The notes beneath the pieces were generated by a model. It ran no database searches. It saw only the letters and a list, made by a program, of their open reading frames with translations, and had not been told where the DNA came from. Position numbers and translations under genes: made by a program. A stretch of DNA of 64,000 bases from Hemiscyllium ocellatum (taxonomy: Eukaryota): positions 10,281,534-10,345,533 of the forward strand of contig NC_083409.1 of assembly GCF_020745735.1 (NCBI RefSeq), read 5' to 3'. Positions 13,494 through 64,000 of this stretch are shown here, piece by piece; position 1 is the first letter of the stretch; every line of letters begins with the position of its first letter.

Positions 13494-13822
13494 CTACACA
13501 CATTCTGATCTCCTGATGCTCTTGCTGAGGGGAGAGGGGAGGGTCACGTGGGTGAGGGCACAGGAGAAGCGAGCGTCAGACTCCCAGTCAGACCCAGAGA
13601 GGGTCAGCAAGGCTGCTGACACTGTAAGTGCTGTCCGAAGCTCGCAGGTAGTTGCTGGTCTGAACCCCGTCCAAAATGACTGCACCGTCCTTCTTCCACT
13701 GCACCTCCAGCTCATCGGGATAGAAGTGATTGGCAAGGCACACCAGGGTGGCAGAGCACTTGGCATTGACCTGCTCTGGGGAGGGGGTAGCAGGGTCAGC
13801 TTGGGCTGAGAGTTCTCACGGC
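13494..13822 (-). pseudogene. IGKC: Ig kappa-type (type III/NS4-like) constant exon with two compensating frameshifts
   Basis: Acceptor ctcttatctttcag|GC CGT GAG AAC. Restored frame reads RENSQPKLTLLP(P)SPEQVNAKCSATLVCLANHFYPDELEVQWKKDGAVILDGVQTSNYLRASDSTYSVSS-LLTLSGSDWESDARFSCALTHVTLPSPLSKSIRRSECV*. There is a -1 in the C run at 13783-13787 and a +1 at about 13609-13610. Confidence 0.93.
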
Positions 13823-17830: not shown

Positions 17831-18597
17831 AGTCTTCTGGAGAGTTTCTCCAAAACCCTGGAACACTGAACCTACTGGACTGTGAGCCCTGCTGGAGCTG
17901 TTTGTCATCAGAACTCTGCATAGAGATAATCCAAGAGTGGAGAGAGTGTGCATCCATGTGGGAATTTCAGAATGTTTCCCCGGTCCTGGAATACCATGAG
18001 TACAGGAAGTGTGGTCAATGACAGCAGCTGGAGCTCTGGGTTTTGGAGCTTGAGCAGCAGCTGGTGTCAGTGCGGAGCGTCCGTGAGGCTGAGAGCACCG
18101 TGGAGAAACGTTTCTAGATGTGGTCACTCTGCAGCTTCAGAGTATGCAGGGAGAGAGGGAATGGGGGAGCAGCAGACAGTCCAAAAGGACCAGGCAGCTA
18201 GTATAGGAGTCCCCAGACATCCTACTCTCCAACCAGGATTCAGTTCAGAATCCTGATGAGAATGATGGTTCATCTGGGGAGTGCAGCCAGAGCCAGGTCC
18301 ATGGCACCATGGGGGGCTCAGCTGTACAGGGGGGCACAAGGAAGACTGGAAGAGTGATAGTGAGAGGAGATTCGAGATTGAAGGCAGTCGATAGGTGTTT
18401 CTGCAGCTGCAGATGGGAATCCAGGATGGTGTGTTGTCTCCCTGGTGCCAGGGTCAAGGATATCACTGAGCGGCTGCAGAGCACCCTGAGGGGAGAGGGG
18501 GAACAGGCAGCAGTTCGTGGTCCACATCAGTCCCAGTGACAGAGGGAGAAAAGGGATGTGGTCCTGCAGTCAGAAGTTTTGGAGCTTCCTACTTTTA

Positions 18598-18678
18598 AGT
18601 AATCTGGGAGCTTCCTACTTTTGAGTTCCTGCTGCTAATTAGTAGCAGGAACTCAAAAGTAGGAATCTCCAGATTACT
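18598..18678. repeat. About 80 bp near-perfect palindrome
   Basis: agtaatctgggagcttcctacttttgagttcctgctgct aatt agtagcaggaactcaaaagtaggaatctccagattact. Confidence 0.85.
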
Positions 18679-18699
18679 CCCAGTGCCCCACGCAAGTGA

Positions 18700-18786
18700 A
18701 GAAGGGCTCAGGCCCGAAACGTCGACTCTCCTGCTCCTTGGATGCTGCCTGACCTGCTGCACTTTTCCACTAACACATTTTCAGCA
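18700..18786 (+). mobile_element. About 87 bp hammerhead-tail element with 14 bp target duplication
   Basis: agaaGGGCtcagGCCCGAAACGTCGACTC plus tail, flanked by ccccacgcaagtga and ccccacacaagtga; the paralogous site near 61715-61730 is empty. Confidence 0.8.
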
Positions 18787-19204
18787 CCCCACACAAGTGA
18801 GAATAGAATCAGGAGGTGAACACAGGTGATTGCTGGGTTGGAAAGAGGATCCATGAGGGAGGGCTTTAGATTTTTGTGAGGTGGTTTACTACTGGTAGAG
18901 AGGGTTTAAACTAACTTGGCAGGGGTGTGGGAGCCAGGGGCTAATATCAGAGAGGAACACCAAGGACCACAGAATCCTCAGAGCAGACAATAACTCACCA
19001 CCCAATGGGAAGAATGTGGAGGATAACAAATGCTAGGAATTTACAGAGATCTGCAAATATGATAGAGGCGTTATAAATGGGCGGGGGGGGGGGGGGTGTC
19101 TTTAATTTCTGAATATAGTGACCAGAGTGGCAAGAGTGTGTTTAGGTGAATTTTCAGGTGGCATTGGTGGCTTAGTGGTGGCTCGGGTTTGTGGGTGTGG
19201 GGGG

Positions 19205-19535
19205 GAGGAGGGGGGTCGGGTCAGCATATTGGCTCAGTGGTTAGCACTGCAGCCTCATAGTACCAGGGTCCCAGGTTCGATTCCAGTCTGGGTGACTGTC
19301 TGTGTGGAGTTTGCACATTCTCCCTGTGTCTGCGTGTTTTTCCTCCGGGTGCTCTGGTTTCCTCCCACAGTCCAAAGATGTGCAGGTCAGGTGAATTGGC
19401 CAGGCTAAATTGTCCATAGTGTTCTATGCATTACTGAGAGGGAAGTGGGTCTGGGTGGGTTACTCTTCGGAGGATCAGTATGGACTTGTAGGGCCGAAGG
19501 GCCTGTTTCCAAGCTATGGAGAATCTAATCTAATC
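19205..19535 (+). mobile_element. HE1/V-SINE-like SINE
   Basis: A/B boxes, core and (AATCT)n tail aatctaatctaatc. Confidence 0.85.
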
Positions 19536-21935
19536 ATTGGCAGTGAAGAAGGTTGTCTAAGAATACAATGAAATCTTGACCAACTGGGCCAGTGGGCTGA
19601 GGAATGGCAGATGGAGTTTAATTCAGATAAAGGTGAGTGCTGTATTTTGGTAAGACACAAGAGATGGGTGAGATCCTGAACAAATATTTTAGGTCAGTAT
19701 ATATTGTGGGGAAAGCTAAGGAATTTGGAAAAATAGTGATGTCTTGAAAAGAGACCACATACAAATGAGGAGATGCAAACAATCTTAAAACACATAGAGG
19801 TAGATAAACTCGAGGACCTGATCATTGTGGCAAACTGGGGAAGAGATTTTTGGGACCCTTGCTGAGATATAAGTATCATCGGCAACCATGGATTAGGTAC
19901 TGGAGAAACAGAGAGGTTGGCTAAGATTATGCCATTATTTCAGAATGGCTGTAAGGAAAAGTGAGGGAACTATAGACCAGTGAGCCTGATGTCAGTGCTG
20001 GGTAAGATGTTGGAGTGGATTCTGTGGGACAGGATTTACACCGTTTGGATAATCAGTGTGGCTTTGTGCATAGGAAATCACGTCTCATGAATTTGATTCA
20101 GGAGGTGACAAAAAGGATTGATGAAGACAGAACAGTAGACATTGTCAATATGGATTTCAGAGTAAAGTGTTTGACAAGGTTCCACATGATAGACTGGTTA
20201 GTGAGGTTAGACCACATGGGGTCCAGGGGGAGCGAGCCATTGGAGTAAAAAAAATTGGCTTGAAGATAGGAGACAGAGAGTGGTGGTAAAAGGTTGCTTT
20301 TCAGACTGGAGATCTGTGAATAGCTGTGTGCCGCAAGGATTGGTGCTGAGTCCACAAATGCTTTACATCATTTAAAGAAATGATTTGGATGTGAATATAG
20401 GAGTTACGGTAAGTTTGTAAATGACACCAAAATTGGTGGGACAGTGGATTGTGAAGAAGATTATCTCAGGGTACAGCGGGACCTTGATCAGATGGGGCAA
20501 TGGGCAGAAGAGTGGCAAATGGAGTTCAGTTTAGATAAATGTGAGATGTTGCATTTTGGAAAGGCAAACCAGGGCAGGAGTTATACAGCTAATGGGAGGG
20601 CCCTGTGGAGTGTTACTGAATAACAGACCTAGGGGTGAAGATGCAGGTACCTTATTCCTTGAAAGTGGGGTCACAGGTAGACAGGGTGATGAAGAAGGTG
20701 TTTGGTTTGCTTGCTTTTGTTCATCACTGCATTGAGTACTGGAGTTGGAACATTATGTTGCAGCAGTACAGGAGATTGGTGAGGCCACTTTGGGAATGAT
20801 GTGAACAATCCTGATCATCCTGAGATAGGAAGGATGTTGTTAAACTTAAAAAGCTGCAGAAAATATTTACAAGGATGTGGCCAGGATTTGGAGGGTTTGA
20901 GCGACAGGGAAAGGCTGAAGAAACTGGGGCTATATTCCCTGCAGCATCTAAGGCCTCGGGGTGACGTTATAGGTGTTTATAAAACCATGAGGGGCATGGA
21001 CTGGGTGTATATCCAAGGTCTTTTCCGTGGGAAAGGGATTCCAAAACAAGAGGACATAAGTTTAAGGTGAGAGGCAAAAGATTCAAAAGGGACCCAAGCG
21101 GTGACTTGTCACACAGACGGTGGTATGTGTCTGGATCGAGCTGCTAGAGAAAACGTTGGAGGCAGATACAGTTACAGCATTTAAAACACATTGGGATGGG
21201 TACATGAATAGGTTGGGTTTTGAGAGGTGTCAGCCAAATGCTGGCAAATGGGATGAGGTCAGTTTAGGATATTTGGTTAGCATGGACAAGTTGGACTGAA
21301 AGGTTTGTTTCCACGCGGTATGACTCCATGATTATGAGCGGCTGGAAAAGCTGAGACTTCTTACCCTGAAGCGGAAGGTTCTGAGGAGTGACCTTGTAGA
21401 GGTTTGGAAAATCATGAGGGACATAGATAATGTGAAGAATTCTGGAAGGAGGCGAATGTTTTGTAGCAATGGCAAAAATTGTTCCCAAAGATCATTCCAG
21501 GGATGAGGAACATCAGTTATGAAGTTTGATCGGAGAATTTGGGACTGTCTTCTTTGGAGAAGGCTGAGAGGAGATTTGTTCAAGGAATTCAGAGTCAGGA
21601 AGGGCCTGGAGAGAGTAAATAGGGAGAAAATGTTCTCAAGTGAGAAAGGATTCAGACCAAGAGACCACAGATTGAAAGCAATTGGGAAAAGGAACAAAGG
21701 TGAGATGGGGAACAACATTTTTGGCCAGTGAGTGGTTAAGGTGTGGAATGCACTGCCTGAGAGTGTGGTGGAGGCAGCTTCAATTAAAACATTCCGAAGG
21801 GAATGAGACTGTTATTTGAAAAGGAGCAATGTGCAGGGTGACAGGGAGAAGGCAGGAGAATGATACTCCGAGAATTGCTCATTCAGAGAGCCGGTCCAGA
21901 CAGAATGGACACCTTGTACACTGTAACAATTCTGT
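19535..21935 (+). mobile_element. Nested CR1-type LINE RT and 3' fragments
   Basis: NYRPVSL.SV.GK, QCGFVHRKS.L.NLI, VPQGLVL, repeated 3' ends. Confidence 0.8.
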
Positions 21936-21990
21936 GATTGTGTGATTGAGCAGAGTTAAAGCTGGGGGAGGTGGGAGCTCAGTGTCTCAC

Positions 21991-22019
21991 TGTGCTGCTG
22001 TTGCTGCTGCTGCTGCTGA
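21991..22019. repeat. (CTG)n microsatellite in the J-C intron
   Basis: ctgtgctgctgttgctgctgctgctgctg; the paralog is (CAG)n near 57998-58024. Confidence 0.85.
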
Positions 22020-22391
22020 GGTCAGTGAGATCAGAGACTGGGACAGGGAGCCAGAGCTCACATCAAAATCTGCCCGTGTCCGTCACACTGAGACTGGCAG
22101 GAGGCTACTCACTGATTTCACTCCATGCTGCAGGAATGGGACCACAGGCTGCAAATGGACAGAGCTCCTCCACACAGTGAGTAAAACTGACTGACTTATA
22201 TCTTGCTGCTTAAAGGGGGCAATAGGACGACAGAAATACAGCTGGACACCCTGTTCGACACAGTGCTCCTCAATCAACCATTTCATTCACTGCAGTTCCC
22301 CACTAACACCTTCAACAATTCAGCATTTGTGTTTTAGAAAGTGTATTTCAGTATTGACAGGGTTAATAACGGACAATTGAGGTTTACTTGC

Positions 22392-22425
22392 TCAGTCTGA
22401 GTTTGGTTCCTTTACCGAATATGTG
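22392..22425 (-). pseudogene. IGKJ: Ig kappa-type J segment (unrearranged), GC donor
   Basis: CAC ATA TTC GGT AAA GGA ACC AAA CTC AGA CTG A|GCAAGT = FGKGTKLRL; the paralog has A|GTAAGT. Confidence 0.92.
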
Positions 22426-22457
22426 AGAGCTCCCAGTGCAGAGGCTGTACAAAAACC
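22426..22457 (-). other. J recombination signal: nonamer plus 23 bp spacer, heptamer missing
   Basis: GGTTTTTGT (22457-22449), acagcctctgcactgggagctct (23 nt), then CACATAT instead of CACTGTG. Confidence 0.8.
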
Positions 22458-22900
22458 TCTGCTCTCTGTTTCCCCCGTCACTCTCAACCTCTCCCTGTCT
22501 CTCTCTGTCTCTGTCTATTCTTGGTCAATCTCATTCACTCCCTACCCCTCTCTGTCTCTCCTTCATTCATATGTCTTTCTCTCTCTGTCTCCCTGGGTTG
22601 TGTCCAGCTACTCTCGGGGGTTTGTGAAATTTAGTTTTCATTGTTAAATCTTGCAACTGTTCTTCACATGCGGCCATGGAGTGTAAGAGGGAAACTTGAG
22701 GCCTTCAGTGAGCGGTGGACACCACATAGACTGGAGTGTGTAGTGGACAGTGACAATCCCAGCATGGGGTAATTTGCTCAATTTACTTTATATATAACTG
22801 TGGATGTGTCAGTGCAGGAGGTGGAACTGTCTGTCCATTATTATACATTTCATATAACTGTTGGATGTGTCAGTACAGGAGGTGGTGTTGTGCGTGTTGA

Positions 22901-22928
22901 GGTTTTTGTATGGCACTGTATCACTGTA
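22901..22928 (-). other. V recombination signal with 12 bp spacer, heptamer mutated
   Basis: TACAGTG-atacagtgccat-ACAAAAACC. Confidence 0.92.
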
Positions 22929-23224
22929 AAGGCTGCTACTATACTGCTGACAGTAATAGTCAGCGACATCCTCATTCTGAACGTTGCTGATTGTCAAGGT
23001 GAAACTGGTCCCTGATCCACTGCCGGTGAATCGATCCGAGACTCCTGTGAATCGAGTTGCTGCATCATAGATCAGGAGAGAGGGTTTCTGACCTTCTCAC
23101 TGCTGGTACCAAGCAAGGTAGCTGCTAATGCTTTGACTGGCCGTACAGGTGATGGTTGCAGTCTGGCCCAGTCCCACTGACAGCACCGGGGGAGACTGGG
23201 TCATGATGATGTCCCCACTGATAC
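22929..23224 (-). pseudogene. IGKV: Ig kappa-type V exon (cluster 1) with in-frame stop in FR2
   Basis: [98 protein letters not shown]; TGA at 23099-23097 where the paralog has CGA. Confidence 0.95.
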
Positions 23225-23410
23225 CTGAGGGGTCAGAGAGAAACACAGTCAAGTCAGAACTGTCACAGAAAGAGCCGGTCAAATGAGAGATTTTTGGAGA
23301 CACTGAGCATTCCTCTGGTTTCAGCATTTTCCCTTCAATCACAAGTCAGTGGAATTGGAGTGAAATGGAGAGCAGCTAAAGATTCAAGGTGGAAGGAGAG
23401 AGATTTGTAC

Positions 23411-23459
23411 CTGCGACACAGAATGCCAGGGGCCAGATCAGCTGGATGTGTGAAATCAT
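23411..23459 (-). CDS. IGKV: Leader exon of cluster 1 V gene
   Basis: ATG...GCA G|GTACAA = MISHIQLIWPLAFCVA; 186 nt intron to cag|GTATC. Confidence 0.9.
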
Positions 23460-23519
23460 GGTGTGTGCTCCTGTCCCTGTGCCTGGTTCCTGATAAACTC
23501 TCCCTTCACTGGGCTCTGC

Positions 23520-23600
23520 TTTATAAAGCTGCAGCCTGAGAGAGCCTGACTGGGTGTTCCTCAGTATGTAAATGGCATCAGGCAGAGAGAGCCACGTCAG
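23520..23600 (-). promoter_or_regulatory. V promoter: TATA box, octamer variant, CRE-like site
   Basis: TATAAA 23525-23520; ATTTACAT 23573-23566 (octamer ATTTGCAT with one change); TGACGTGG; all the same in cluster 2. Confidence 0.75.
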
Positions 23601-23610
23601 CCCCTCACAC

Positions 23611-23613
<3 letters not shown>

Positions 23614-23650
<37 letters not shown>
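23614..23650. repeat. (CT)n microsatellite just upstream of the V promoter
   Basis: Direct observation; the paralog is a (GA)-rich tract near 56846-56905. Confidence 0.9.
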
Positions 23651-23652
<2 letters not shown>

Positions 23653-24564
23653 AGAATCATTGATGTGAACAACATTGAATGACGCCAATGTGAGTAAACA
23701 AAGATCTGATGACACTAATCCCATCCTCCAGCTCTTGGCCCGTTACCCTGGAGGTTACAGCAACACAAGGGAATATCTAAACAATGCTCCAATGTCACGA
23801 GAGTTTGTGACTCAACCAGCCTTTCAGGCAGTGAGTTCCAGACTCCCACCACCCTCTGGGTGAAAACATTTCTCCTCAATTCTCCTCTCACTCCAATTTG
23901 ACTGGGCCTGGACTCACTCAAGTTCAGAAGGATGAGAGGGAATCAGATTTTATACATCTGATTGAGATGTATAAAATTCTAACAGGGCTGGGCAGGGAGG
24001 AGGTTTCCCCTGGCTGGGAAGTCTGGAATCAGGGGACCCAGTCTCAGAGGGATACAGGGTAGACCATTTTCGACTGAGATGAGGAAACATTTCTTCACTC
24101 AAAGGGTAGGACAACTGTGGAACCCAAGGAACTGAATAAATTCAAGAAAAAGAGAGAGATAATTGTTTTGCATTTTAACAGCATGAAGGGAATAGGGAGA
24201 AAGCAGGAATATGGTTTTGAGATGGAGGATCAGCCATGATCATAGTGAATGACAGAGCAGACTCAAAGAGCCAAAAGGCCTACTCCAGTTCCGAGTTTCT
24301 ATGTGTCCATGTCTGTGTTACCTGGGACACAGGTTATTGAGTCCTTTACTGATATATAAAGTGCCTTCTTACCCACGGTATCACTGCCCCAAATAATCTT
24401 ATCCCCCTCTATCATGTCCCCTCTCAGCCTTCACTGCTCCAAGGAAACAATCCCAACCTTTCCAAGATTTCCCCACAGCTGACCCTCCATCCCAGGCAGC
24501 ATCTTGGTAAATCTCTGCACCCTCTCAAGTACAATCACATCCTTCCCAGAATGTGGTGACCAGG

Positions 24565-24936
24565 ACCTATCCACCTCTCTCTCTCTGTCTCACATCTGTC
24601 ACTTCTTTCTCTCTATCCCTCTCTCTCCTCCTGTTAATCTCTTTCATGTTCTCTCTCTCTCTCACTCTGTCTCATAGCCACACTCCCCAATTCACTCATG
24701 CTTTCTCACTCCATCTCATAATCTTTATTTTTCCATCTCTCACTGTCTCCATAACACCTTCCCTCTCTCGCTTCAATTTAAATCCTCTGTTATCTCTCCT
24801 CTCTATACTTCCCTCTGTCTGTCTCTCTCCCTCCCTCTCTGTATTCCCAAATCTACAGTCGCACTCCCTCCCTCTCTGTCATTCTGTTTCTAATCATACT
24901 CATGTCTCTCACTTTCTCTCTCTCTCTCTCTCTCTG

Positions 24937-24980
<44 letters not shown>

Positions 24981-25025
24981 ACAGACACTCACCCTTTGTC
25001 TCTGACTCACTTCTCTCTCTTTCTC
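24565..25025. repeat. Polypyrimidine low-complexity tract with (CA)n
   Basis: CT-rich throughout, (CA)n near 24937-24978; mirrored by the GA-rich tract 55180-55825. Confidence 0.85.
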
Positions 25026-25529
25026 ACAGTGTCCCAGGTTGTGGCAGTTGAATTCAGGATGAATCTCCCTCTCTCTGCCCCACTCATGGATGTTAACCCT
25101 TGACCCCAGAAGCATGTTTTCTCCTGGAGTAAGGCCCCATTTTCCACATTGACCTGGATTTGGCCTCTCTCAGAAAGATGGCTAGATTCTTGTCAAATGA
25201 AGGGCAGTTCTGTGCTTTTGGCCTGTTCTCACTGGGGACTGGTTTGGACACAAAGCTCATTCCATGAAGGCCCAGCAGAGAGAGGAGATCCTCAGGCCAT
25301 CAGTGTGAGCTGGAGGGACAGCACAGGCTCTGACCCACTGATCCAGCCTGTCCATTCACAACATTTTCCAATCCCTTCCCCTCTCCTACCCCTCTCTTTC
25401 CCTTTCCATGATCAGTCTCTGAGTCAGGGTGTTTTACTGGGATGTGGGTTGAACCATTACACAGTTACAACAGAAAGGAACCGAACCCCACACTCACCTT
25501 GGAGTCCATGATGCACTGGAGTCTCCTAC

Positions 25530-25790
25530 AGAGTCCAGTAAACATGGCCTCCTTCCTGCAAGAGCCTCCACTAGAGACCAGTAAACATTGGTCTCCTTCT
25601 GACTGGACTCTCCAAAGGAGACCAGTAAACATGTATCTCTTTCGGACTGGATCATCTAATAAAGACCAGTAAACATGGATGTCCTTCCTGCTGGAACCTC
25701 CAACACAGACCAGTAAACATGGATCTCCTTCTGACTGGATCCTCCAAGACAGATCAGTTAATATGGGCCTCCTAATCATTGGAACTTCCA
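25530..25790 (+). repeat. 43-44 bp minisatellite, 6 units
   Basis: ccagtaaacatgg core at 25535, 25578, 25622, 25666, 25710, 25754. Confidence 0.9.
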
Positions 25791-27030
25791 ATGGAGATGA
25801 GCAGATGGTTTAATTTTTGAAGAAGTAAGCAAGAAGATAGGTAAAGATAGAGTAGTACACTCTGTCTACATGGAGTTAATACAAGGTTCCCTATGGTAGA
25901 CTGCTCAGTAAGATTATATCACATAGGATTCAGGGAGACCTCGCCAATTGGATATAAAATTGGCTTGATGATAGGAGGCTGAGGCTGGTGAGAGAGGGTT
26001 GTTCTTCAGACTGGAGGCCAGTGACCAACTGTCTGTCACAAGAATCGATCCTGGATCCACTGTTGTTCATCATTTATATGAACAATTTGGATGAGAAAAT
26101 AGAAGGAATGGTCAGTAAGTTTGTGGCTGACGTTAAAATTGTTGGCATAGTGGACAGGGAAGAAGGTTATGCAAGAGTGCAATGTCATCTTGATCAACTG
26201 GGCCAGTGGGTCAACAAATCCAGATGGAATTTTCGATAAATGGAAGGAGTTGCATTTTGGTAACACAAACCAGGGCAGGAATTACACAATTAATGGTAGA
26301 GCCATGGGGAGTGTTGTTGAACAGAGAGACTGAGGGGTACAGGTACATAGTTCCTTGGAAGTGGTGTCACAGGTAGACAGGGTGGTGAAGAAGGTATTTG
26401 GCATGCTCGCCTTCACTGGTCAAAGCAGGGAGTACAGGAGCTGGGACATGTTACAGCTGTACAAGGCATTGGGAAGGCCACATTTGGACACAGTACATTT
26501 CTGCTCATCCTGGTATAGGAAGGAAGTTATGACAGTGGTTTGAATAAAAGAAAGATTAACAGGGATGTTATCAAGATTGGAGGATTTGAATTACAAGATG
26601 AGGATGAATAGGCCAAGATGTTTTTTCCAGGGAATGCAGGAGATTGAGGGATGACCTTATAGAGGTTGTAGAATCATGAGGGTCATAGATAAGGTGAATA
26701 GTCAAAGTCTTTTCCCCAGGGTAGGAGAGTCCAGTACTAGAAGGAGTAGGCTTAAGTTGAGAGGGGAAAGATTTAGTAGGAAACTGAGAGGCAACATTTT
26801 CACACAGAGGTTAGTGTGTATGTGTAATGAGCTGCCATAAGAATTCGTAAAGGTGAGTACAATTACTACATTTCAAGGACATTTTTACAGGAACATGGAT
26901 AGGAAGGATTTAGAGAGAATTGGGCCAAACGCATGCAGATGGGACTAGTTCAGTTTTGGAAACTTGGTCAGCATGGATGAGTAGAGCTGAAGGGCCTGAT
27001 CCCATGCTGTAAAACTCTATGACTCTTTGA
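25790..27030 (+). mobile_element. CR1-type LINE RT and 3' end interrupting the minisatellite
   Basis: DWRPVT..LSQESILDPLLFIIYMNNLDE...SKFVAD.KI; intact 3' tail. Confidence 0.85.
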
Positions 27031-27039
27031 TGATGTATA

Positions 27040-27175
27040 CATGGGTCACTTTCCCGTAGAACCAGTAAACATGGACCTCTTTCCACTGGAACCTCCAATA
27101 GACACCAATAAACAGGAACCTCCTGCCCACTGGATGCTCCAGAAGAGACCAGTAAACATGGCCCTCCTTCCCTCA
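27040..27175 (+). repeat. Continuation of the 43-44 bp minisatellite, 3 units
   Basis: Core at 27062, 27105, 27149. Confidence 0.85.
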
Positions 27176-28479
27176 GGACTGTCCAGCACCTGCGCTGCAA
27201 ACCCCACATCCTCTCCATCATGTATGCCTCTTATTTCAATCTCAACAACATTGTCTCTGCACTACTTCAGCCCCTTGACCACAGAAACCCTAATTCCTGC
27301 TCGTCCTGCCCCCTAACTCTATGGTTCCAATGTCCTCTCCCAGCTTCCTAAAGCCATATTCCATAAACTCCAACTTGTCTGATATGGAGTGGGCCCTTCC
27401 CTGTCTTATCCATCTGTCATTCCAGAATGACCCCTGACCTCACTGCCAGCCAATTGCCTCCATAGCCTCCCTCCTCCCTCTGTCTGTGTCCTGCTGCAGA
27501 CTCACATTCCCTCCCTCCCCCTTCCATCTTCTGTCTCTGGGCTCCTGTCCATTGCTGCTTGCTCCATCCCACCATTGACAGCAGAGCCTTCAGACCCCTA
27601 CAGCATGCTCTCTGACCTCCTGCCCTTGAACCCTCCCCCTCTCAATGGTTGTGCTATTGAATATACTGTTCAATCCCATCACTTTTGGTTCACTGTTCCC
27701 TTGCCATTGATTTGCTGAATTATTCCTCATCAGTAAATCTAGTCTGGCCTGTTCCCTGAGTTGGTTCAAGAAAGTTTTCCTTGAGAAAACATTCTTTTGT
27801 AAACTGGGTTGTCTGTTTCTCCCAGTCTTTGTGTAAAGGTGAGTCTAAGTGTGTGTAAGCTCTTATACAGCACAGACAGAGGTCACTGGGCTGATTGTGA
27901 CTGTTAGTCAAATGAGTCCAATGAGTTCCCATTTCCCCAGCCCTTCCTGTATAACCCTGCAATTATTTCCTTTTCAGCTATTTCTCCAAATGCCCTTTTG
28001 AAAGTTGCTGTTGAATCCACTTCCACTCACCTTGCAGACCGTCATCATGAACTCGCTGGATAAAAAATGTTCCTATCTTCTCTCTTGTGCTTTAGACTCT
28101 TTCTGAAATGTGTGCCCTCTGGTTACTGACCCTCCTGCCTGGAGAAACAATTTGTCCTGTATTTACTGCATCCAGACTCTCCAATTGTGAACCCCTCATT
28201 GAGTGAGACCTATTTCCAGCACAGGGGGAGAACATTCAGCCTGTCAGGGAAATGCTGTCATTTCATGGAGCAATCCAGTCAGTCCCACCCCCTCCCCTAC
28301 TCGACCCCCAGAGCCTTGCAGGTTTATTTCCATCAAGAGCCCACCCAATCTGCCATTGCAATCACTGAGTGTCTTCACCTGTCTCACCTGAATGGGCACT
28401 AATTTCGAAGTCATTACCAATTGCTGTTCAAAACAAAGTTCTTTCTGACATTCCATATCTCTTGCCCAACAGAATGTAA

Positions 28480-29040
28480 GGTAATCTCAATGTGAAGATT
28501 GGATTTTGTCTCCACACGGACTGTGCGGTGGTCACCCTTACTGATACTGTCATGGACAGATACACCAGCAGCAGGCAGGTTGGTGAGGGTGATAGTGAGT
28601 ATGTTTTTCCTTCTTGTTGGTTCCCTTCACCACCTGCCCCAGGTCCAGTCTAGCAGCTGAATCAGGTGGAGCGTGACCAGTTTGCTCAGTAGTGATGCTT
28701 CTGAGCAGCTCTTGATGGTGGGCTTTGAAATCCGTTACTCAGAGTATATCCTGCATCATTCCCATCCTCTGCGCTCCCTCCAAGTGTTGTTCAACATGGA
28801 GGAGGACTGACTGCTCAGTTGAGGTTGGAGCGGAGGGCGGTGCTATGTGGTAATCAGCAGGAGGTTTCCTTCCCCATGTTTGACCTGCTGTCATGAGGCT
28901 TCATGGATTCCATAGTTAATGGTGAGGACTCTCAGGGCAACTCCCTTCCGACTGTACACACCACTGTGTTGCCTCCCCTGCTTGGTCTATCCTGCCAGTT
29001 AGAAACTGAATGAGGGAACAATTCTGTGCAGGTTTCACAG
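28480..29040 (-). mobile_element. Non-LTR retrotransposon endonuclease-region fragment
   Basis: Homologous to 53530-54000 in the same orientation, so an independent copy of that family. Confidence 0.6.
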
Positions 29041-29159
29041 CTTGGAGACAGAGCTGCTGCTGGATTCTGTTTCTGATCTCCGAGTGCAGGCGTGTGTGTT
29101 TGTGAGAGAGTGACTGACACCTTTTCCAAAACTGTGCTGTTTCTGCAAAAAATAAATCC

Positions 29160-29420
29160 TAGAACCAGCCTCCTGTGCTGTCAGATTCCAGGGAGTGCAG
29201 ACAGTTCACAGTTTTCTCCCGTCTCAGTAACAAACACCCAGCTGCTCCGAGCTCCTTCTTTCACTTCCTCTTTTGGTGAAGTTTCAACCTTGTGCTCTGA
29301 CAGTCTTTGCAGTTATTTTTTACACTGGGACTTTCTGCTGTGGTCAGAATCTCTAATAATAAGTGTCCAATCAGTGACAATCACAGCAGCTAAGAGCAGT
29401 CAGGACTGAGGAGCCAGGCT
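29160..29420. promoter_or_regulatory. Candidate B-cell enhancer upstream of cluster 1
   Basis: Apparently unique block conserved with 51680-51935: E-box CAGCTG 29239-29244, EICE GGAAGTGAAA (minus, 29259-29268), kappaB-like GGGACTTTCT 29327-29336, Runx TGTGGT 29339-29344. Confidence 0.5.
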
Positions 29421-30049
29421 CATTGTGAAACATATTGGGAAGATCAAAGCCATCCTCTTCAGATCCTGGTATAAGCTCCATCCCTCTCCCTGAGAATTCT
29501 CTGCTGCTCAACCAGACTCTTTACAAACTGGGTCTCATGTTTGAGAATGATCTAAGACCCGTATCTTCCATATCACAAAGATCAGCCACTGAAAATCTCA
29601 GCCATGTTTATGGGGCTCCAAACATGACCATTCCAATGGCTGATGCACATCACAGCCACTGCCCTCCGTATCCTTCAGCTCATCCAAAATTCTGCTGCCC
29701 GTATCCAAACTTGCACCATGTCCCGTTCCCACAACCCCCTGCACCCCGTGCCTATATTGGCTCCTGGTCGAGCAACACCTCGATTTTCAAATTCTCATCC
29801 TTGTTCTCAAATCCCTCTCTGCCCTCCACCCTCCCTATCTCTGTAACCTCATCCAAGCTGCCTCACTCCATGTGGTCAGCAATCTTGGATAATTGGCTCT
29901 CTATTCCTTCATCCAAGTCATTGAGAAATATCGTGAAATACTGAGGCTCCTGCACAAATCCCTGGGGACACCACTATTCACATCTTGTTCATTGGAGAGC
30001 ACACACATTATGCCTCTTCTCTGTCTCCTACCTCCAAACTAATTCCTAA

Positions 30050-32260
30050 CCCAAGACAAATAATTTTCTAGAGCTTTCTTGATGATAGGAAGCAGAGGTA
30101 ATATTGGAAAGATGCTTGTCAGACTGGAGGCCTGTGTTGAGTGGAGTGCCTCAGGGCTCAGTGCTGACCCATTACTGTTTATTATCAATATTAATGATTT
30201 GAATGAGAATCTGTAAGGCATGATTAGTAAGTTTGATGTGCAGGTCAGGTGAATTGGCCATGTTAAATTGGCCATAGTCTTAGGTACATTAGTCAGAGGG
30301 AAATGGGTCTAGGTGGGTTACTCCAGAGGGTCGGTGTGGATTGGTTGGGCTGAAGACCTGTTTCCACACTGGAGGGAATCTAATCTCTCATCTTGTACAG
30401 GATGTCAGTGAGTTCGCACTTGGAATATTGTATTCAGTTTGGTCACCTTGTTATAGGAAGGATATTACTAAACCAGAAAGAGTACAGAAGAAATTTGCAA
30501 GGATGTTGCCTGGACTCAACAATCTGAGTTATAGGGAGAGGTTAGGCAAGTTAGGACTTTTTTCTTAGAGCGTAGGAGACTGGTGGGGGATCTTTTAGAA
30601 GTGTATAAGATCATGAGAGACACGGACAGGGTTGGGGAAACGAGGATGAGAGGGCATCAGTTTAGTGTTAGAGAGGAATGAATAAAAGGGAACCTGAGGG
30701 GCAACATTTTTACACAGAGGGTGGCACGCATGTGGAATGAGATGCCAGCTGAAGTGATTGAGGTGGATACATTAACAACATTTAAAAGACATTTGGACAA
30801 ATACATAGATAGGAAAACATTTGAAGGATATGGGCCAAGTGCAGGGAAATGGGGTTAGCATGGATGGACATTTTGGTCAGCACGGTCCAGTTTGGGCCAA
30901 AGGGCCTGTCTCTGTGCTGTAGGACTTGATGGCTCTAAGACTCTATAATTCCATATGTTTCCATGTTTCTGAACAGTCTCTCAAACATAGAAACAAAGGA
31001 ACTAGGAGCAAGAGGAAGCCATTCAGCCCTTCGAGTTGGCTCTGCCATTCAATGTGACCATGGCTAATCATCCAACTTAGTCCCCTGCTCCCATTTTTTC
31101 TCCATAAAATTTAACCCCTTTAGTCCTAAGAATATACTTATCCTCTCTTGAAAATATTGAATGTTTTGGGCTCAACTGCTTTCTGTGACAGAATCTCCCA
31201 CTAGCTTCCCACTCTCTGGCTAAAGAAATGTCTCCTTAGCTCAGTCTGAAATAACCTTTCACTTTTCGTTAAACCATAATTCGTAGTTCTGGATTCCCCA
31301 GTCATCAGGAACATCCTCCCTGTGTTGTTCTGGCCTTGTCCTGTTCGGATTTTCAAGGTTACAATATGATTCCTTTCAATCTTCTCAGTGCCAATGAATA
31401 TAATCCTAACTGATCCAGTTTCTCATCAGATCGAAGTGCTGTCCTCCCAGGAATCAGTCTAGTAAACCTTCGCTGCCCTCCCTCCACAGCCAGAACATCC
31501 TTCCTCAGATAAGGAGCCCGAAACTACCCACGACAGAATCATAAAATCACACAGTACAGAGGAGGCCCTTCAGTCCATTAACTGTGTACCAGCCAAACTA
31601 CACTAAACCTACACCAGTCCCACTTTCCAACATGAGGCCCACAGCTTGAATGTTATGACATTTCAACTGCTCACCCAAGAACATTTTAAAATTAGTAAGA
31701 TTTCCCACCTCAACTCCCCTCCCAGGCTGTGCATTCCAGATGCACACCATTCTCTGGATGAAAAACATTTTCCTCAAAACATCTTGAAACCTCCTACCTT
31801 TCACAATGAATGTGAGTCAACGTGTCACTGACCCTCCCATGAAAGAGAACAGCTGCTTTCTCTCCTCCCTGTTCATTCCCCTCATAACCTTATACACCTC
31901 TATCAGGTCCCCCCTCCACCTTCTCTGCCCTGAAGAAAACAACCCGAGCTGATCCAATTTCTCTTCATCACTGAAAGGTTCCATCCCACACAACATCCTG
32001 GTGATTCCCCTCTGCACCCCATCCAGTGCAATCACATCCTTCCTACAGTGTGGTGACCTGAACTGCACACAGCACTCCAGCTGTGGTCTCACCAATGTTC
32101 TGCTTAACTGCAGCATATCCTCTTGCTTTTATAACCAATACCTGACATGACAAAGGCAAGTGTCCCCTATGCCTTCATAACTGCTCTGTTAACCTGTCTT
32201 GCCATTTTCAGGGATCAGTGGAGAAGCACTCCAAGATCACCCTGTTCCTTTGAATTTCTT
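30050..32260. mobile_element. Several CR1 3' fragments in both orientations and a SINE fragment
   Basis: YSVWSPCYRKDI.K.ERVQKKFARMLPGL (+); LECCVQFRSPHCRKDVIAL (-). Confidence 0.75.
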
Positions 32261-56865: not shown

Positions 56866-56902
<37 letters not shown>

Positions 56903-56914
56903 AGTGGAAGTGTG

Positions 56915-57000
56915 AGGGGCTGACGTGGCTCTCTCTGCCTGATGCCATTTACATACTGAGGAACACCCAGTCAGACTCTCACAGGCTGCAGCTTTATAAA
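56915..57000 (+). promoter_or_regulatory. V promoter of cluster 2
   Basis: TGACGTGG at 56921; ATTTACAT 56947-56954; TATAAA 56995-57000; ATG at 57061. Confidence 0.75.
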
Positions 57001-57060
57001 GCAGAGCCCAGTGAAGGGAGAGTTTATCAGGAACCAGGCACAGGGACAGGAGCACACACC

Positions 57061-57109
57061 ATGATTTCACACATCCAGCTGATCTGGCCCCTGGCATTCT
57101 GTGTCGCAG
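57061..57109 (+). CDS. IGKV: Leader exon of cluster 2
   Basis: MISHIQLIWPLAFCVA G|GTACAA, identical to cluster 1. Confidence 0.92.
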
Positions 57110-57295
57110 GTACAAATCTCTCTCCTTCCACCTTGAATCTTTAGCTGCTCTCCATTTCACTCCAATTCCACTGACTTGTGATTGAAGGGAAAATGCAGAA
57201 ACCAGAGGAATGCTCAGTGTCTCCAACAATCTCTCATTTGACCGGCTCTTTCTGTGACAGTTCTGATTTCACTGTGTTTCTCTCTGACTCCTCAG

Positions 57296-57621
57296 GTATC
57301 AGTGGGGACATCATCATGACCCAGTCTCCCCCGGTGCTGTCAGTGGAACAGGGCCAGACCGCAACCATCACCTGTACGGCCAGTGAATCTGTAAGCAAGT
57401 GGGTTAGCTGGTACCAGCAGCGAGAAGGTCAGAAACCCTCTCTCCTGATCTATGAAGCAACAAAACAATTCACAGGAGTCTCCGAGAGATTCACCGGCAG
57501 TGGATCAGGGACTAGTTTCACCCTGACAATCAGCAACGTTCAGAATGAGGATGTCGCTGACTATTACTGTATGCAGTATAGCAGCTCCCCTCGTTCGGTA
57601 AAGGAACCAAGCTCAGACTGA
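57296..57621 (+). CDS. IGKV: Pre-joined kappa-type VJ exon; V intact, junction out of frame, stop at the last exon base
   Basis: [108 protein letters not shown]. Junction CCT-CG-TTC GGT AAA GGA ACC; no RSS at the junction; donor GTAAGT at 57622. Confidence 0.95.
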
Positions 57622-58476
57622 GTAAGTAAACCTCAATCCTCTGTTATTAACCCTGTCAATACTGAAACACACTTTCTAAAATACAGTTACTGATTTGTTG
57701 AAGGTGTTAGTGGGAAGCTGCAGTGAATGAAATGGTTGATTGAGGAGCACTGTGTCTAACAGGGTGTCCAACTGTATTTCTTTACATTCATGCCCTCTTT
57801 AAAAAATGCAAGATATGAGTCAGTAAGTTTTACTCACCGTGTGGAGGAGCTCTGTCCATTTGCAGCCTGTGGTCCCATTCCTGCAGCATGGAGTGAAATC
57901 AGTGAGTAGCCTCCTGCCAGTCTCAGTGTGACGGACACGGGGCAGAGTTTGATGTGAGCTCTGGCTCCCTGTCCCAGTCTCTGATCTCACTGACCTCAGC
58001 AGCAGCAGCAGCAGCAGCAGCAGCACAGTGAGACATCGAGCTCCCACCTCCCCCAGCTTTAACTCTGCTCAATCACACAATCACAGAATTGTTACAGCGC
58101 ACAAGGAGACCATTCCGTCCATCCTGTCTGGACTAGCTCTCTGAATGAGCAATTGACAGAGTGACATTCTCCTGCCTTCTCCCTGTCACCCTGCACATTG
58201 TTCCTTTTCAAATAACAGTCTCATTCCCTTCGGAATATTCCAATTGTAGCTGCCTCCACCACACTCTCAGGCAGTGCATTCCACACCTTAAACACCCACT
58301 GGCCGATAAAGTTTTCCCTCATCTCAGTTTTCTTACTTTTTCAATTACTTTCAATCTGTGGCCTCTCGGTCTCAATCCTTTCACAAGTGGAATCATTTTC
58401 TCCCTATTGACTCTGTTCCAGGCCCCTCCTGATTTTGAGTTTCTGGAACAATTCTCCTCGCTGCCTTCTCCAAAGA

Positions 58477-58678
58477 CTTGAAGGTGCCGGTGTTGGACTG
58501 GGGTGGACAAAGTTAAAAATCACACAACACCAGGTTATAGTCCAACAGGGGGTTTATTTGGAAGCACTAGCTTTCGGAGCGCCCCTCCTTCATCAAATGG
58601 TTGTCAACGGCGCTCCAAAAGCTAGTGCTTCCACATTAACCTGTTGGACTATAACCTGATGTTGTGTGATCTGTAACT
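58477..58678. mobile_element. Inverted hammerhead-tail element with 11 bp target duplication
   Basis: ttctccaaaga at 58466-58476 and 58679-58689; minus strand CAT-TTGATGA-A-GGAG..CTCC-GAAA-GC-TA-GTG; the paralogous site near 21550 is empty. Confidence 0.8.
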
Positions 58679-59574
58679 TTCTCCAAAGAAGATAGATTGG
58701 AGAATTTGGGACTATCTTTATAACTGATATTCCTCATCCCTGGAATGATCTTTGTGCATATGTTTGCCAGCTCTACAAAACATTCACCTCCTTCCTGCAT
58801 TATTCACATTATTTATGTCCCTCATGATTTTATAAACCTCTGTAAGGTCACTCCTCAGCCTCCGGCCCTTCAGGGTAAAAGATCTCAGCTTTTCCAGCTT
58901 CTAATGGTCACGGAGTCAGACAGCGTGGAAACAGATCTTTCAGTCTAACTTCTCCATACTAACTAGATATCCAAAACTGACCTCATCCCATTTGCCAGCA
59001 TTTAGCCCACATCCCTCTAAACCCTTCCTATTCATGTACCCATCCAAACATCTTTTAAATGCTGTAATTGTATCCATCTCCAGCACTTTCTCTGACAGCT
59101 CGATCCGTACACACACCACCCTCTGTGTGACAAGTTACCCCTCAGGTCCCTTTCGGATCTTTTTCCTCTCATCTTAAACCTACACCCTCTAGTGTTGGAT
59201 TCCCTTTCCCAAGGCAAAGACCTGGGATGTACACCCTGTCCATGCCCGTCATGATTTTATAAACATCTATAAGGCCACCCCTCAGTCTCCGATCCTGCAG
59301 GAAGAATAACCCGTCTATTGAGCCTCTTTCGACAGCTCAAACCCTCCAGTTCCAGGCAACATCCATGTAAATCTTTTCTGCAGAATTTTAAGTTTAACAG
59401 CATCATTCCTATCACAGGATGATCAGAATTGTTCACATTATTCCCAAATTTCCTGTACAGCTGCAAATGGTGTCCCAACGCTGATACTTAGTGCAGTGAC
59501 CAATAAAGCAAATGTACCCAACACCTTCTTCATCTCCGTCTCCCTATGACTTCACTGTCAAGGAATAATGCCCC

Positions 59575-59608
59575 TGCCCCTGCCCCTGCCCCTGCACCTG
59601 CACCCTGA
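59575..59608. repeat. (CCCCTG)n hexamer repeat
   Basis: gcccctgcccctgcccctgcccctgcacctgcaccctg. Confidence 0.8.
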
Positions 59609-59705
59609 GGTCACTTTGTTGAGCAACACTCCACAGGGCCCCACCATTAACAGTACAAGTCCAGTCCTGGTTTGACTTTCCAAAATTGAACTCCATTTGC
59701 CACAC

Positions 59706-59917
59706 GTTTAGATCAGAGTGGTGCTGGAAAAGCACAGCAGGTCAGGCAACATCCGAGGAGCTGGAAAATCGACGTTTCGGGCAAAAGCCATTCATCAGGA
59801 TTCCTCTAGCCGAAAAGTCGATTTTTCTGCTCCTCAGATGCTGCCTGACATGCTGTGCTTTTCCAGCACCACTCTGCTCTAAACTCTGGTTTCTAGCATC
59901 TGCAGTCCACACTTTCG
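59706..59917. mobile_element. Inverted hammerhead-tail element with 14 bp target duplication
   Basis: tccatttgccacac at 59692-59705 and 59918-59931; minus 59803-59766 GAATC-CTGATGA-A-TGGCttttGCCC-GAAA-CG-TC-GATTT; the paralogous site near 20510 is empty. Confidence 0.82.
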
Positions 59918-62900
59918 TCCATTTGCCACACCTCTGCCCATTTCCCCAAATGATCAAGGTCCCACTGTACTCTCAGATAAGCTTCTTCACTATCCACTGT
60001 ACCACCAATTTTGGGATCATTTACAAACTCGCCATAATTCCTATATTCACATCCAAATCATTTATTTAAATAATGAAAAGCCGTGGACCCAGCACCAATC
60101 CTTGTGGCACACAGCTGACATCTGATCTCCAGTCTGAAAAGCAACCCCTTACCACCACTCTCTGTCTCCTATCTTGAAGTCATTTTTTTTACCCAAATGG
60201 CTAGCTCCCCTGGATCCCATGTGGCCTAACCTTACTAATCAGTCTATCATGTGGAACCTTGTCAAATGCTTTGCTGAAGTCCATAGTGTCTACTGTTCTG
60301 CCTACATCAATCTTCTCTTCAAACAACCTCAATCACGTTAGTGAGACACGATTACCATGCACAAAACTGCATTGATTGTCCAAATGCATGTAAATCCTGT
60401 CCCTCAGAATTCACTCCAATAACTTACCCAGCAATGACATCAGGCTCACTGGTTTATAGTCCCCTGGCTTTTCCTTACAGCCTTTCTTAAATAATGGCTA
60501 ACATTAGCCAACCTCTCTGGTTCTCCAGAACCTCACTCATGGCTGTCAATCAGAAACATACCTCAGCAAGGGGTCCAGCAATCTCTTTCCTAGCTTTCCA
60601 CAATGTCCTGGGATACACCTGATCAGGTCCTGGAGATTTATCTTCTGTCTTGCACTTAAACTCATCTTCTTCTGTAATGTGGACTTGTGTCAAGACATTA
60701 CTATTTACTTCCCAAGTTCCCAAATTTCCATGTCTTTCTCCATGATAAATACTGACCTGGAATATTCATTTAAGACCTAAACCATTTCCTGTGGATACAC
60801 CCAGAGGTACATTGTTCATCTTCATGGGGCCCTATTCTCTCTCTAGTTACTCTTTTGCCCTTTTCTTATTTACCATAATTCTACCACTTTTGCCCTTGAG
60901 TAAGTTCAGGAATTGTTTGCCCTCCTTCAAATGTATCTCGAATATACCTGGTCCACATCCTCTACTATTCTTTTCAGGACTTTCCTGCCAACCTTTGATC
61001 CCACTTTATTCAGATCCGTTACATCCATATCCTATAGAAGCTGGCATTTTCCCCAGTGAAGATGTTTGACCCTGAAAAGGCCTTTGTTCTTTTCTACCAT
61101 CACCCTCAAATTTGTGATACTTAAGGGCACTCTTCCTTAAGTGTCCTCTCACTGACACTTGATCCACATGGGCCTCCTCATTTCCAAGATCCAGATCTAG
61201 CAGAGCCTCCTTTCTCATTGGACTGGAAACCTGCGGCTGGAGAAAATTCACATGAACACACTCTCACGACTCTGGCCCCTCTGTCCTTCACACTGCTACT
61301 ACCCCAGTCTATATTCATAAATTAAAGACATTCACACCCCACCAACCCCATTTATAATGACTATTACATTTGCAGGTCTCTGTAAATTCCTTGCAAATGT
61401 ATTCCTCTAAATCCTTCCCACTGGGTGGTGACTTATTGACTGCACTGATGATTCTGTGGACCTTGGTGTTTCTCTCTGACAGTCCCTCCTGGCTTCCACA
61501 GCCCTGCCAAGTTAGCTTAAACCCTCTCCAACAGCACGAGTAGATCACCTCAAAGGAGCTCAGTGCCAGCTCTGTTCAGGAGCAACGCTGTCTGGTCTAA
61601 CCAGGTCCCATCTCCCCCAGACCCAGTCCCAATATCACAAGAATCTAAAACCATCCCTCCTGGATCCTCTTCCCAGCCCCACAGTCACTTGTGTTATCCT
61701 CCTGCTCCTCTTCTCACTTGTGTGAGGCACTGGGAGTAATCTGAAGATTCCTACTTTTGAGTTCCTGATGTTAATTCCCTTCTGATCTCCCTAAATTCTG
61801 ACTGCAGGACCACATCCCTTTTCTCCCTCTGTCACTGGGACCGATGTGGTCCACGACTGCTGCCTGTTCCCCCTCTCCCCTCAGGGTGCTCTGCAGTCGC
61901 TCAGTGACATCCTTGACCCTGGCACCAGGGAGACAACACACCATCCTGGATTCCCATCTGCAGCTGCAGAAACACCTATCGATGCCCTCACTCTCGAATC
62001 TCCTTCCACGATCACTCTTCCCGTCTTCCTTATACAACCACCTCCCCCCCCCACCCCCCGCCCCACCACCCCCCGCCCCAATACAACTGAGCCACCAGTG
62101 GTGCCATAGACTTGGCTCTGGCTGCACTCCCCAGATGAACCATCATTCTCATCAGGATTCCAAACTGAATTCTGTTTGGAGAGTGGGATACACTCAGGGT
62201 ATTCCTGTACTAGCTGCCTGGTCCTTTTGGACTGTCTGCTGCTCCTCCATTCCCTCTCTCCCTGCATACTCTGAAGCTGCAGAGTGACCACATCTAGAAA
62301 CGTGCTCTCCACGGAGCTCTCAGCCTCACGGACGCTCCGCACTGACACCAGCTGCTGCTCAAGCTCCGAAACCCAGAGCTTCAACTGCTATCACTGACCA
62401 CACTTCCTGTACTCATGGTATTCCAGGAGCTGGGAAGCATTCTGAAGTTCCCACAAGGAACAGGATGCACACGCTCTCCACTCTTTGGTTGTCTCTGGGC
62501 AAAGTTCTGATGACAAACAGCTACAGCAGGGCTCACAGTCCAGTGGGTTCAGTGTTGCAGGGTTTTGGGATTACTCTCCAGAAGTCTTTAAAAAATAGGA
62601 GCACAAATCAGCCATTCAGCCCATTGGATCTGCTCTGCCATTTGATCTTGGCAGATATGCTTCTCACCCCCATTCTCCTGCCTACTCCACAGGAACGTTC
62701 GATCCCCTTTACAATCACAAACCTATCTATCTCTGTCTTAAATACACTCAGTGACTTGGTCTCTAGCCCACTGTAGCAATGAGTTCCACAGATTTCCCAC
62801 CGTCTGGCTGAAGAAAGTCCTCCTCATCTCAGCTCGAAAGGTTGGCCCTTCATTCTGAGGTTGTGCCTTGGTTACCGAGTCTCTCCTGTTTTTAGAAACA

Positions 62901-64000
62901 TCTTCTCTGTATCCACTCTACCCAGGTCTATCAGTATTCTGTAAATTTCAATAAGGTGCCTTTGAAGTCTAAAACCTTACCAACAACTGAGTCCTGGCTA
63001 ACTGGCCTATCATGTCCCATCTTCTACCTCCCTCCCTTCTTAAACAGGGATGGTGTGTAAGCCATTTTCCTGTCCCTTGCCCCCACCAAATCCGTCCCCA
63101 CCCCACCTCCACACCCTGACTCCATTGATTCCTGAAAGATCATCACCAATGCCTCCACAATCTCCTCAACAATCTCCTTCAGAACACACTGGTGTAGTTC
63201 ATCCAGTCTGGGTGCGTTATCCACATTCAGACCATCTAACTTCCCCAGTACCTCCTCCTTAGTGATGGCCACTGCACTCCCATCCGACCCCTGACAGTCT
63301 TGAAGTACTGGTACACTACTAGTGTTTTCCATGGTGCAGACTGATGTGAAGTATCTATTCAATTCCTCTGCTATTCCTTCATTTCCTGTTATTCTTTCTC
63401 CAGCCTCATTTCCAGTGATCCATAGTCTATTTTTGACTCCCTCTTCCTTCTTATACACCTGATAAAGCTCCTGCAATCTTCTTTTATATTACTGGCTAGA
63501 TAACTCCCACATTTCACCTTCTCCACCCTTAATGCTTTTTCAGTTATCCTCTGCAGATTTTTAAAGGCTTCCTAATCCTCTGGCCTCCCACTATTCTCCA
63601 CCACATTGTATGCCTTTTCCTTTTGTTTTTATGCTGTCCTTGACCTCCCCCATCAGCCATGGTTGCCTTGTCCTCCCCCTGGTATGTTTCTTCTTTTTTG
63701 GGATGAGTTCCTGTTCTGCTTCCTGAATTACCCCCAGAAACCCTGCTGTTTGCTGTCCCACCATTATACCTGCTCGAGTCCCCTTCCAACCAACTCTGGC
63801 CAGCTCCTTCCTCATGTCTTTGGAGTTACCTTTACTCAATTGAAACACTGTTCAATCTGATTACAGCTTCTCTCTCAAACTACAGGGAGAATTCTATTGC
63901 ATTATTGTCACATATCCATCGGGATACTTTCACCTTAAACTCACGAGTCAAGTTTGCCTCAATACACATCACCGAATCTAGACCTGCCTGTTCCATAATG

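Follow-up and report, generated by a model that had tools for sequence, protein, structure and literature searches.

An apparently germline-joined kappa light-chain gene near a split relative in the epaulette shark, Hemiscyllium ocellatum

A stretch of 64,000 nucleotides of Hemiscyllium ocellatum (epaulette shark) DNA (NCBI RefSeq assembly GCF_020745735.1, contig NC_083409.1, positions 10,281,534 to 10,345,533 of the forward strand; this whole stretch is called the window, and its first letter is position 1) contains a kappa light-chain gene on the + strand in which V and J are already fused in the assembled genome. This gene, designated cluster 2, is in our judgement probably a germline-joined kappa gene (type III, NS4-like), created by a RAG-type V-to-J deletional recombination in a germ-line cell. 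Its joint is out of frame. A second kappa cluster in the window, cluster 1, is on the opposite strand and is still split. Evidence that the V(D)J recombinase is sometimes active in the germ cells of sharks, and so alters the genome that is inherited, comes mainly from germline-joined antibody genes. Cluster 2 belongs to a class that has been known since 2000 and leaves that picture unchanged; what it adds is a clean example, in which every base of the joint can be compared with unjoined relatives.

The joined gene and its split neighbour

The features of both clusters are given in Table 1. The promoter stretch of cluster 2 is common to all of the family members that were aligned. In tblastn comparisons, the leader matches kappa chains of the nurse shark and of the epaulette shark at 100% over their residues 1-17, and RNA contigs of run X12 skip exactly the leader intron, a result whose resolution is that of the gene family. 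The V part retains Cys23, Trp35, and Cys88 in an open frame that is free of stops. The closest protein relatives of the V domain are shark kappa light chains with 82-85% identity; the best matches are proteins named 'immunoglobulin kappa light chain-like' from Chiloscyllium, Hemiscyllium, and Cetorhinus, together with a nurse shark V-C sequence (P0017). Judged by its V-set domain and by the 12/23 signal layout of its split relatives, cluster 2 is a kappa (type III, NS4-like) light-chain gene. When the window was searched by tblastn with full-length kappa chains, the only constant exon matched was that of cluster 1, and no constant exon of cluster 2 was found there; homology with cluster 1 predicts a position about 2 kb past the window end.

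Within the window the reading frame is the sole lesion of cluster 2, since the promoter, leader, splice sites, and V frame are all intact. Translation of the spliced leader plus VJ shows that the joint lacks one base for a continuous frame, which is equivalent to an excess of two. The V frame consequently stops at a TGA (57619-57621) that is the last codon of the VJ exon, and the predicted spliced product has 124 residues, ending …RSVKEPSSD. (The frame call hinges on a run of four C's at 57587-57590; a fifth C would yield an in-frame gene.) With its stop at the exon junction, a spliced cluster 2 message is predicted to have some chance of escaping nonsense-mediated decay. Such a message would, as predicted from the sequence, encode a V domain that lacks the J strand.

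A BLAST search of the window with 56901-57700 returned one relative, on the minus strand. This is cluster 1, which matches cluster 2 at 94.3% on the V side, from the promoter to V (23617-22935), and at 89.7% on the J side (22419-22313). The two clusters are arranged head to head, 33 kb apart, on the inverted arms of a decayed inverted duplication, each arm about 14 kb long (roughly 16231-30069 versus 63995-51013). Approximately 21 kb of repeat-rich DNA separates the arms.

Cluster 1 carries at least six disabling lesions: the stop in FR2, the altered V heptamer, a deletion at the J border, a GC donor, and two frameshifts in the constant exon. The crippled TACAGTG signal of its V appears to have been passed on when clusters were duplicated. 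At J, alignment with three split genes of Chiloscyllium punctatum (L001-L003) shows that the heptamer/coding border has been lost to an 8-bp deletion (ACTGTG and GG, by comparison with L002 and L003), leaving the J remnant …ACATATTCGG…, and the donor that follows reads GC rather than GT (22391-22390). The frameshifts of the constant exon are of opposite sign and lie near …LLPP/PEQ… and …VSSL/LTLS… (the slash marks the point of the shift), so that in a three-frame reading the first and last parts of the exon share one frame and the middle is in another. Two side observations concern the signals of this cluster. The 8-bp deletion at J could have been left by a cut that was closed again with loss of bases, or it could have arisen by chance. 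In addition, an epaulette shark protein, P0031, reads through its signal with the same …LYSD… as cluster 1.

Table 1. Features of clusters 1 and 2 in the window, with the identity between the two clusters where it was determined
Feature	Position	Strand	Identity, cluster 1 vs 2	Basis or remark
Upstream flank			82-89%	
Cluster 2 promoter stretch	56900-57060	+	98.7%	
Cluster 2 promoter, octamer-like ATTTACAT	56947-56954	+		motif position; putative function
Cluster 2 promoter, TATA-like TTTATAAAG	56993-57001	+		motif position; putative function
Cluster 2 leader exon, ATG at 57061	57061-57109	+	100%	tblastn
Cluster 2 leader intron, 186 bp, GT..AG	57110-57295	+	97.3%	sequence
Cluster 2 fused VJ exon	57296-57621	+		GTAAGT donor from 57622
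Cluster 2 V part, ending …TAT AGC AGC TCC CCT at 57591	57296-57591	+	89.3% (V exon), differences mostly in CDRs	Pfam V-set E=1.3e-18
Cluster 2 joint dinucleotide CG	57592-57593	+		2-nt microhomology, suppliable by either coding end
Cluster 2 J part, TTC GGT AAA GGA ACC AAG CTC AGA CTG A	57594-57621	+	96.4%	J frame FGKGTKLRL plus 1 nt
Cluster 2 J-C intron, running off the window	57622-64000	+	89-90%	collinear with cluster 1 22391-16231
Cluster 1 leader	23459-23411	-	100%	
Cluster 1 leader intron, 186 bp, and V exon 23224-22929	22929-23459 overall	-		sequence
Cluster 1 in-frame TGA in FR2	23099-23097	-		translation
Cluster 1 V signal, TACAGTG-12-ACAAAAACC	22928-22901	-		essential first heptamer C replaced by T
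Cluster 1 J signal and J	22392-22457	-		nonamer GGTTTTTGT at 22457-22449; 23-bp spacer present
Cluster 1 constant (C1-set) exon	13494-13822	-		tblastn; Pfam C1-set E=6.7e-13; about 8.5 kb below J

The joint read against split relatives

The joint was analysed in an alignment of both clusters with L001-L003 and with one joined kappa gene, L004, all four on short contigs of Chiloscyllium punctatum. In the unjoined genes (cluster 1 and L001-L003), V is followed by a signal with a 12-bp spacer and J is preceded by one with a 23-bp spacer. The V of L001, for example, ends …CCCTCGA and continues into CACAGTG-12-ACAAAAACC; L001, L002, and L003 all have the heptamer CACAGTG. The J of the split genes begins as GGTTTTTGT-23-CACTGTG, followed by GCTTCCGTTCGG (as in L001) or by GGACACGTTCGG. 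In cluster 2, the sequence at 57586-57598 reads …TCCCCT-CG-TTCGG…, with V contiguous with J. Both signals and the spacer are absent, and the missing DNA amounts to 509 bases relative to cluster 1 (22928-22420) and 508 relative to L001. Measured against the split genes, 1-3 nt have been lost from the V coding end and 5-7 nt from that of J, for a total of 8, and no added bases are needed to account for the joint; the two BLAST pieces of L001 overlap exactly at 57592-57593. Loose ends of contigs from three DNA sequencing runs have CACTGTG-GCTTA immediately before 57592.

Because both breakpoints sit within a few bases of the signal/coding borders, the joint has, in its sequence, the look of a RAG-type coding joint formed with no contribution from terminal transferase. 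The structure of the joint is observed directly; that RAG was the enzyme is what we infer from it. Also observed is the collinearity of the flanks of cluster 2, which extends over about 14 kb with cluster 1 and over several kb with L001 (2.9 kb upstream plus downstream pieces). Two other explanations fail on these grounds, since the promoter, introns, J donor, and flanks are collinear with those of the split relatives. A processed retrocopy is rejected because cluster 2 has kept both introns, the promoter, and flanks on the kb scale, and a chimeric assembly is rejected because the flanks on either side of the joint are collinear with both cluster 1 and L001.

A sequence-only reading of this DNA had described most of this anatomy. 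Its account of V running directly into J (TCC CCT CG TTC GGT AAA) is correct, coordinates included, and the loss of both signals and about 500 bp of V-J DNA is borne out by the bases of cluster 1 that have no counterpart in cluster 2. Its argument for a join at the DNA level, as opposed to a retrocopy, holds for the promoter, leader intron, J donor, and kb-scale flanks, and the translations of V and J agree with its statement that the joint is one base short of frame.

The events proposed for cluster 2 would then be as follows. An ordinary split cluster, with V, spacer, and J, would have undergone RAG-type deletional recombination in a germ-line cell. Both signals would have been excised along with the spacer of roughly 500 bp, and the coding ends, trimmed by 8 bases in total, would have been ligated at the 2-nt CG overlap without additions. 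With an out-of-frame joint, the gene would have been incapable of encoding a light chain from the moment of joining, and because no signals are left, the joined cluster would be unable to rearrange again.

Age and origin of the join

The neutral DNA of the two clusters differs by 11-18% (flank identity 82-90%). The split gene L001, from another species, has 88-92% identity to cluster 2, which is as close as cluster 1. Because cluster 1 is no closer to cluster 2 than this, sequence comparison places it as a neighbouring member of the family and not as the immediate precursor, and the join is left undated by it. The suggestion of the sequence-only reading that the sister copy preserves the state before joining is thereby weakened: cluster 1 is split, but it is inverted, has only 82-90% neutral identity, is no closer than L001, and is dead. 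In comparisons by identity, the closest relatives of cluster 2 that were found are split genes, with cluster 1 at 94% from the promoter to V (89% for the V exon by itself) and L001 at 92%. The join is probably much younger than the duplication that separates the clusters, and younger than the decay of cluster 1, because cluster 2 is intact apart from its frame while cluster 1 is heavily decayed over the same span. Counts of cluster-specific changes against three outgroup genes (12 and 17) are too few and too even to date the join.

The annotation of the same species (GCA_020745735.1) contains a pair of kappa genes that bears on this question. P0005 ('immunoglobulin kappa light chain-like') is joined, and its V is followed by J in the wrong frame (…RSVKEP…), as in cluster 2; P0035 is split, and its gene model reads through the spacer and the J signal. 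The two proteins are identical over the leader and V (115 residues) and over the constant region. P0005 is on a 116-Mb chromosome record and spans 9235 bp, and P0035 is on a 72-kb unplaced scaffold and spans 9753 bp; the 518 bp by which they differ correspond to the size of a V-J spacer. The pair may represent one locus in two states, that is, haplotypes, a very recent duplicate, or a non-germline molecule. Because the leader-V and constant-region protein sequences are identical, a joined copy in an assembly of this type may belong to one haplotype and need not be fixed. P0005 was also considered as an orthologue of cluster 2, which would make the join old. This was rejected, since the V identity is 83% (17 of 98 residues differ), P0005 exceeds cluster 2 by one codon in CDR3, and P0005 is matched by the split twin described above; the P0005 gene spans about 9.2 kb. 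Among the annotated proteins no split twin of cluster 2 was found, the best V identity being 85%.

The segment from the promoter through the leader intron (56900-57295 versus 23620-23225) is 97-100% identical between the clusters, and it is likewise conserved in Chiloscyllium paralogues. Identity this high points either to non-coding sequence under strong constraint or to gene conversion that has homogenised the copies. Set against the neutral divergence, it can be taken to favour an origin in which the joined state of cluster 2 was copied in by gene conversion from another joined kappa gene, or was inherited through duplication of a cluster already joined, and the J of P0005, as deduced from its protein, is cut at the same CGTTCGG position. 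Such an origin is nevertheless improbable. Homology to the split genes continues up to the joint from either side, the partner staying the same throughout, and no database protein shares the V of cluster 2 above 85%. P0005, for its part, differs from cluster 2 at 17 V residues and at three bases of the junction, besides having a split twin of its own.

Another reading is that cluster 2 is germline-joined but in frame and functional, a base having been lost through assembly error in the C run at 57587-57590. The intact state of everything but the frame within the window would fit a functional gene, and relatives do possess in-frame joined kappa genes. Homopolymers of four bases are, however, rarely miscalled in current consensus assemblies, and out-of-frame joined kappa genes are documented both in the nurse shark (R19) and in the epaulette shark annotation (P0005). 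We consider it quite unlikely that the frame defect is an error of this kind.

The germ-line setting of the join was approached through sequencing runs as well. A search listed 24 runs, from several organisms, with at most 57% of the sampled words of 57040-58040, and four were examined as short Logan contigs with depths in the hundreds: one RNA run and three DNA runs, each of the latter from a different organism. The contigs merge gene copies, and in place of the bases specific to cluster 2 (57197 A, 57267 T, and 57289 T) they carry the family base. Among the longest pieces listed from the four runs (more than 3000 further pieces exist), no contig bridges 57586-57594, and a search with the 75 bases around the joint, which comprised three sampled junction words, listed no run. 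Because contigs of this type drop rare variants, the missing junction contigs do not constitute evidence against the joint.

That the join is of germline origin is something we infer, on three grounds: a clonal somatic joint should not win the assembly consensus, the assemblies of related sharks also hold joined kappa genes, and germline joining has been proven experimentally for the same gene family in the nurse shark. The joined genes found in related assemblies are L004/P0024 (in frame), P0001, P0002, P0016 and P0046 (in frame), and P0005 (out of frame). A somatic B-cell rearrangement, or some other non-germline molecule taken into the consensus, would agree with the wrong frame, which is typical of B-cell rearrangements that have not been selected. 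It would also agree with the lack of a joint-spanning piece among the contigs listed from independent runs and with the presence, in a single assembly, of split and joined versions of one kappa gene of the epaulette shark. Yet each B-cell joint is specific to its clone, with dozens of clusters to choose from, and any one joint would be expected to make up a minute share of the molecules. Furthermore, the assemblies of several species carry joined kappa genes, and those of the nurse shark were proven germline by Southern blots with erythrocyte DNA from seven animals. A somatic source is accordingly very unlikely. Least credible is a deletion that did not involve RAG, such as replication slippage or end-joining at the CG overlap, since, even though the 2-nt overlap and the lack of added bases would suit it, both ends of the approximately 508-bp deletion lie no more than 7 nt from the heptamer/coding borders, on the coding side, with the signals wholly removed, a placement that by our own estimate would arise by chance about once in 10,000 or less (random end points, span of about 1.4 kb), and the same pattern recurs in independent joined genes.

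Within the preferred reading, germline joining by RAG-type recombination, the join of cluster 2 could be very recent and perhaps still polymorphic, one of many germ-line V-J joins that arose independently, and continue to arise, in the kappa locus of the epaulette shark. This is a tentative idea and on the whole unlikely; it is raised because the P0005/P0035 pair, the strongest lead on joins that are still polymorphic, points that way. If pairs of this type are haplotypes of one locus, germ-line RAG activity would become measurable in pedigrees or sperm, in a shark bred in the laboratory. Cluster 2 would be of practical use as a marker: in combination with the other joined kappa genes, it would allow independent joins to be counted and polymorphism to be checked in a species that is bred in aquaria.

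Comparison with known joined genes

Among the publications searched, no paper on epaulette shark light-chain genes was found. The closest known system is the NS4 family of the nurse shark, in which Lee, Fitch, Flajnik & Hsu (J Exp Med 2000; PMC2193156) described the joined genes R4, R7, R18, RE18, R6, and R19. About 10% of roughly 50 NS4 genes are joined in the germline, a status established by Southern blot and PCR with erythrocyte DNA from seven animals, and the joins were attributed to RAG-like activity in germ cells (PMC2193156). The sequence-only reading had cited germline-joined NS4 genes and this attribution, and both are found in that paper. Cluster 2 resembles NS4 in light-chain type, in cluster layout, in the 186-bp leader intron, and in a spacer of about 500 bp in the split members (502-524 bp in nurse shark; PMC2193156). 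In both systems the joints have small losses and little or no added sequence, and the joined genes are nested among split ones. The restriction fragments also correspond: PstI releases 727-754 bp from joined and about 1200 bp from split NS4 genes (PMC2193156), and here cluster 2 yields 732 bp and cluster 1 yields 1239 bp. Two of the six joined NS4 genes, R6 and R19, are pseudogenes, and R19 is out of frame in CDR3 (PMC2193156). The differences are that the species is Hemiscyllium ocellatum and not the nurse shark, that germline status was shown by experiment there and is deduced from sequence here, and that the J-C intron is about 8.5 kb here. In addition, the frame of R19 was restored by the authors through omission of one base, whereas the joint of cluster 2 is one base short.

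A second comparison is with the joined gene P0024/L004 of Chiloscyllium punctatum, in which V likewise runs directly into J without signals and the leader intron and J donor are kept; L004 aligns end to end with window positions 56899-58441. This gene differs from cluster 2 in that its J is read in the correct frame and its V-J-C model (237 aa) is complete, and in having only 78-81% identity and a shorter span (4.4 kb). Its joint sequence is distinct from that of cluster 2 and longer. The likeness to a VpreB-like, V-only component of a surrogate light chain is confined to the predicted 124-aa reading frame of cluster 2.

Finally, the joint of cluster 2 shares its form with the non-productive VJ joints of B lymphocytes, in which the signals and spacer are excised, the ends are nibbled, and the frame is wrong. 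Those joints are somatic and clonal and are not inherited, whereas cluster 2 stands in the genome consensus with normal flanks, which argues for its inheritance.
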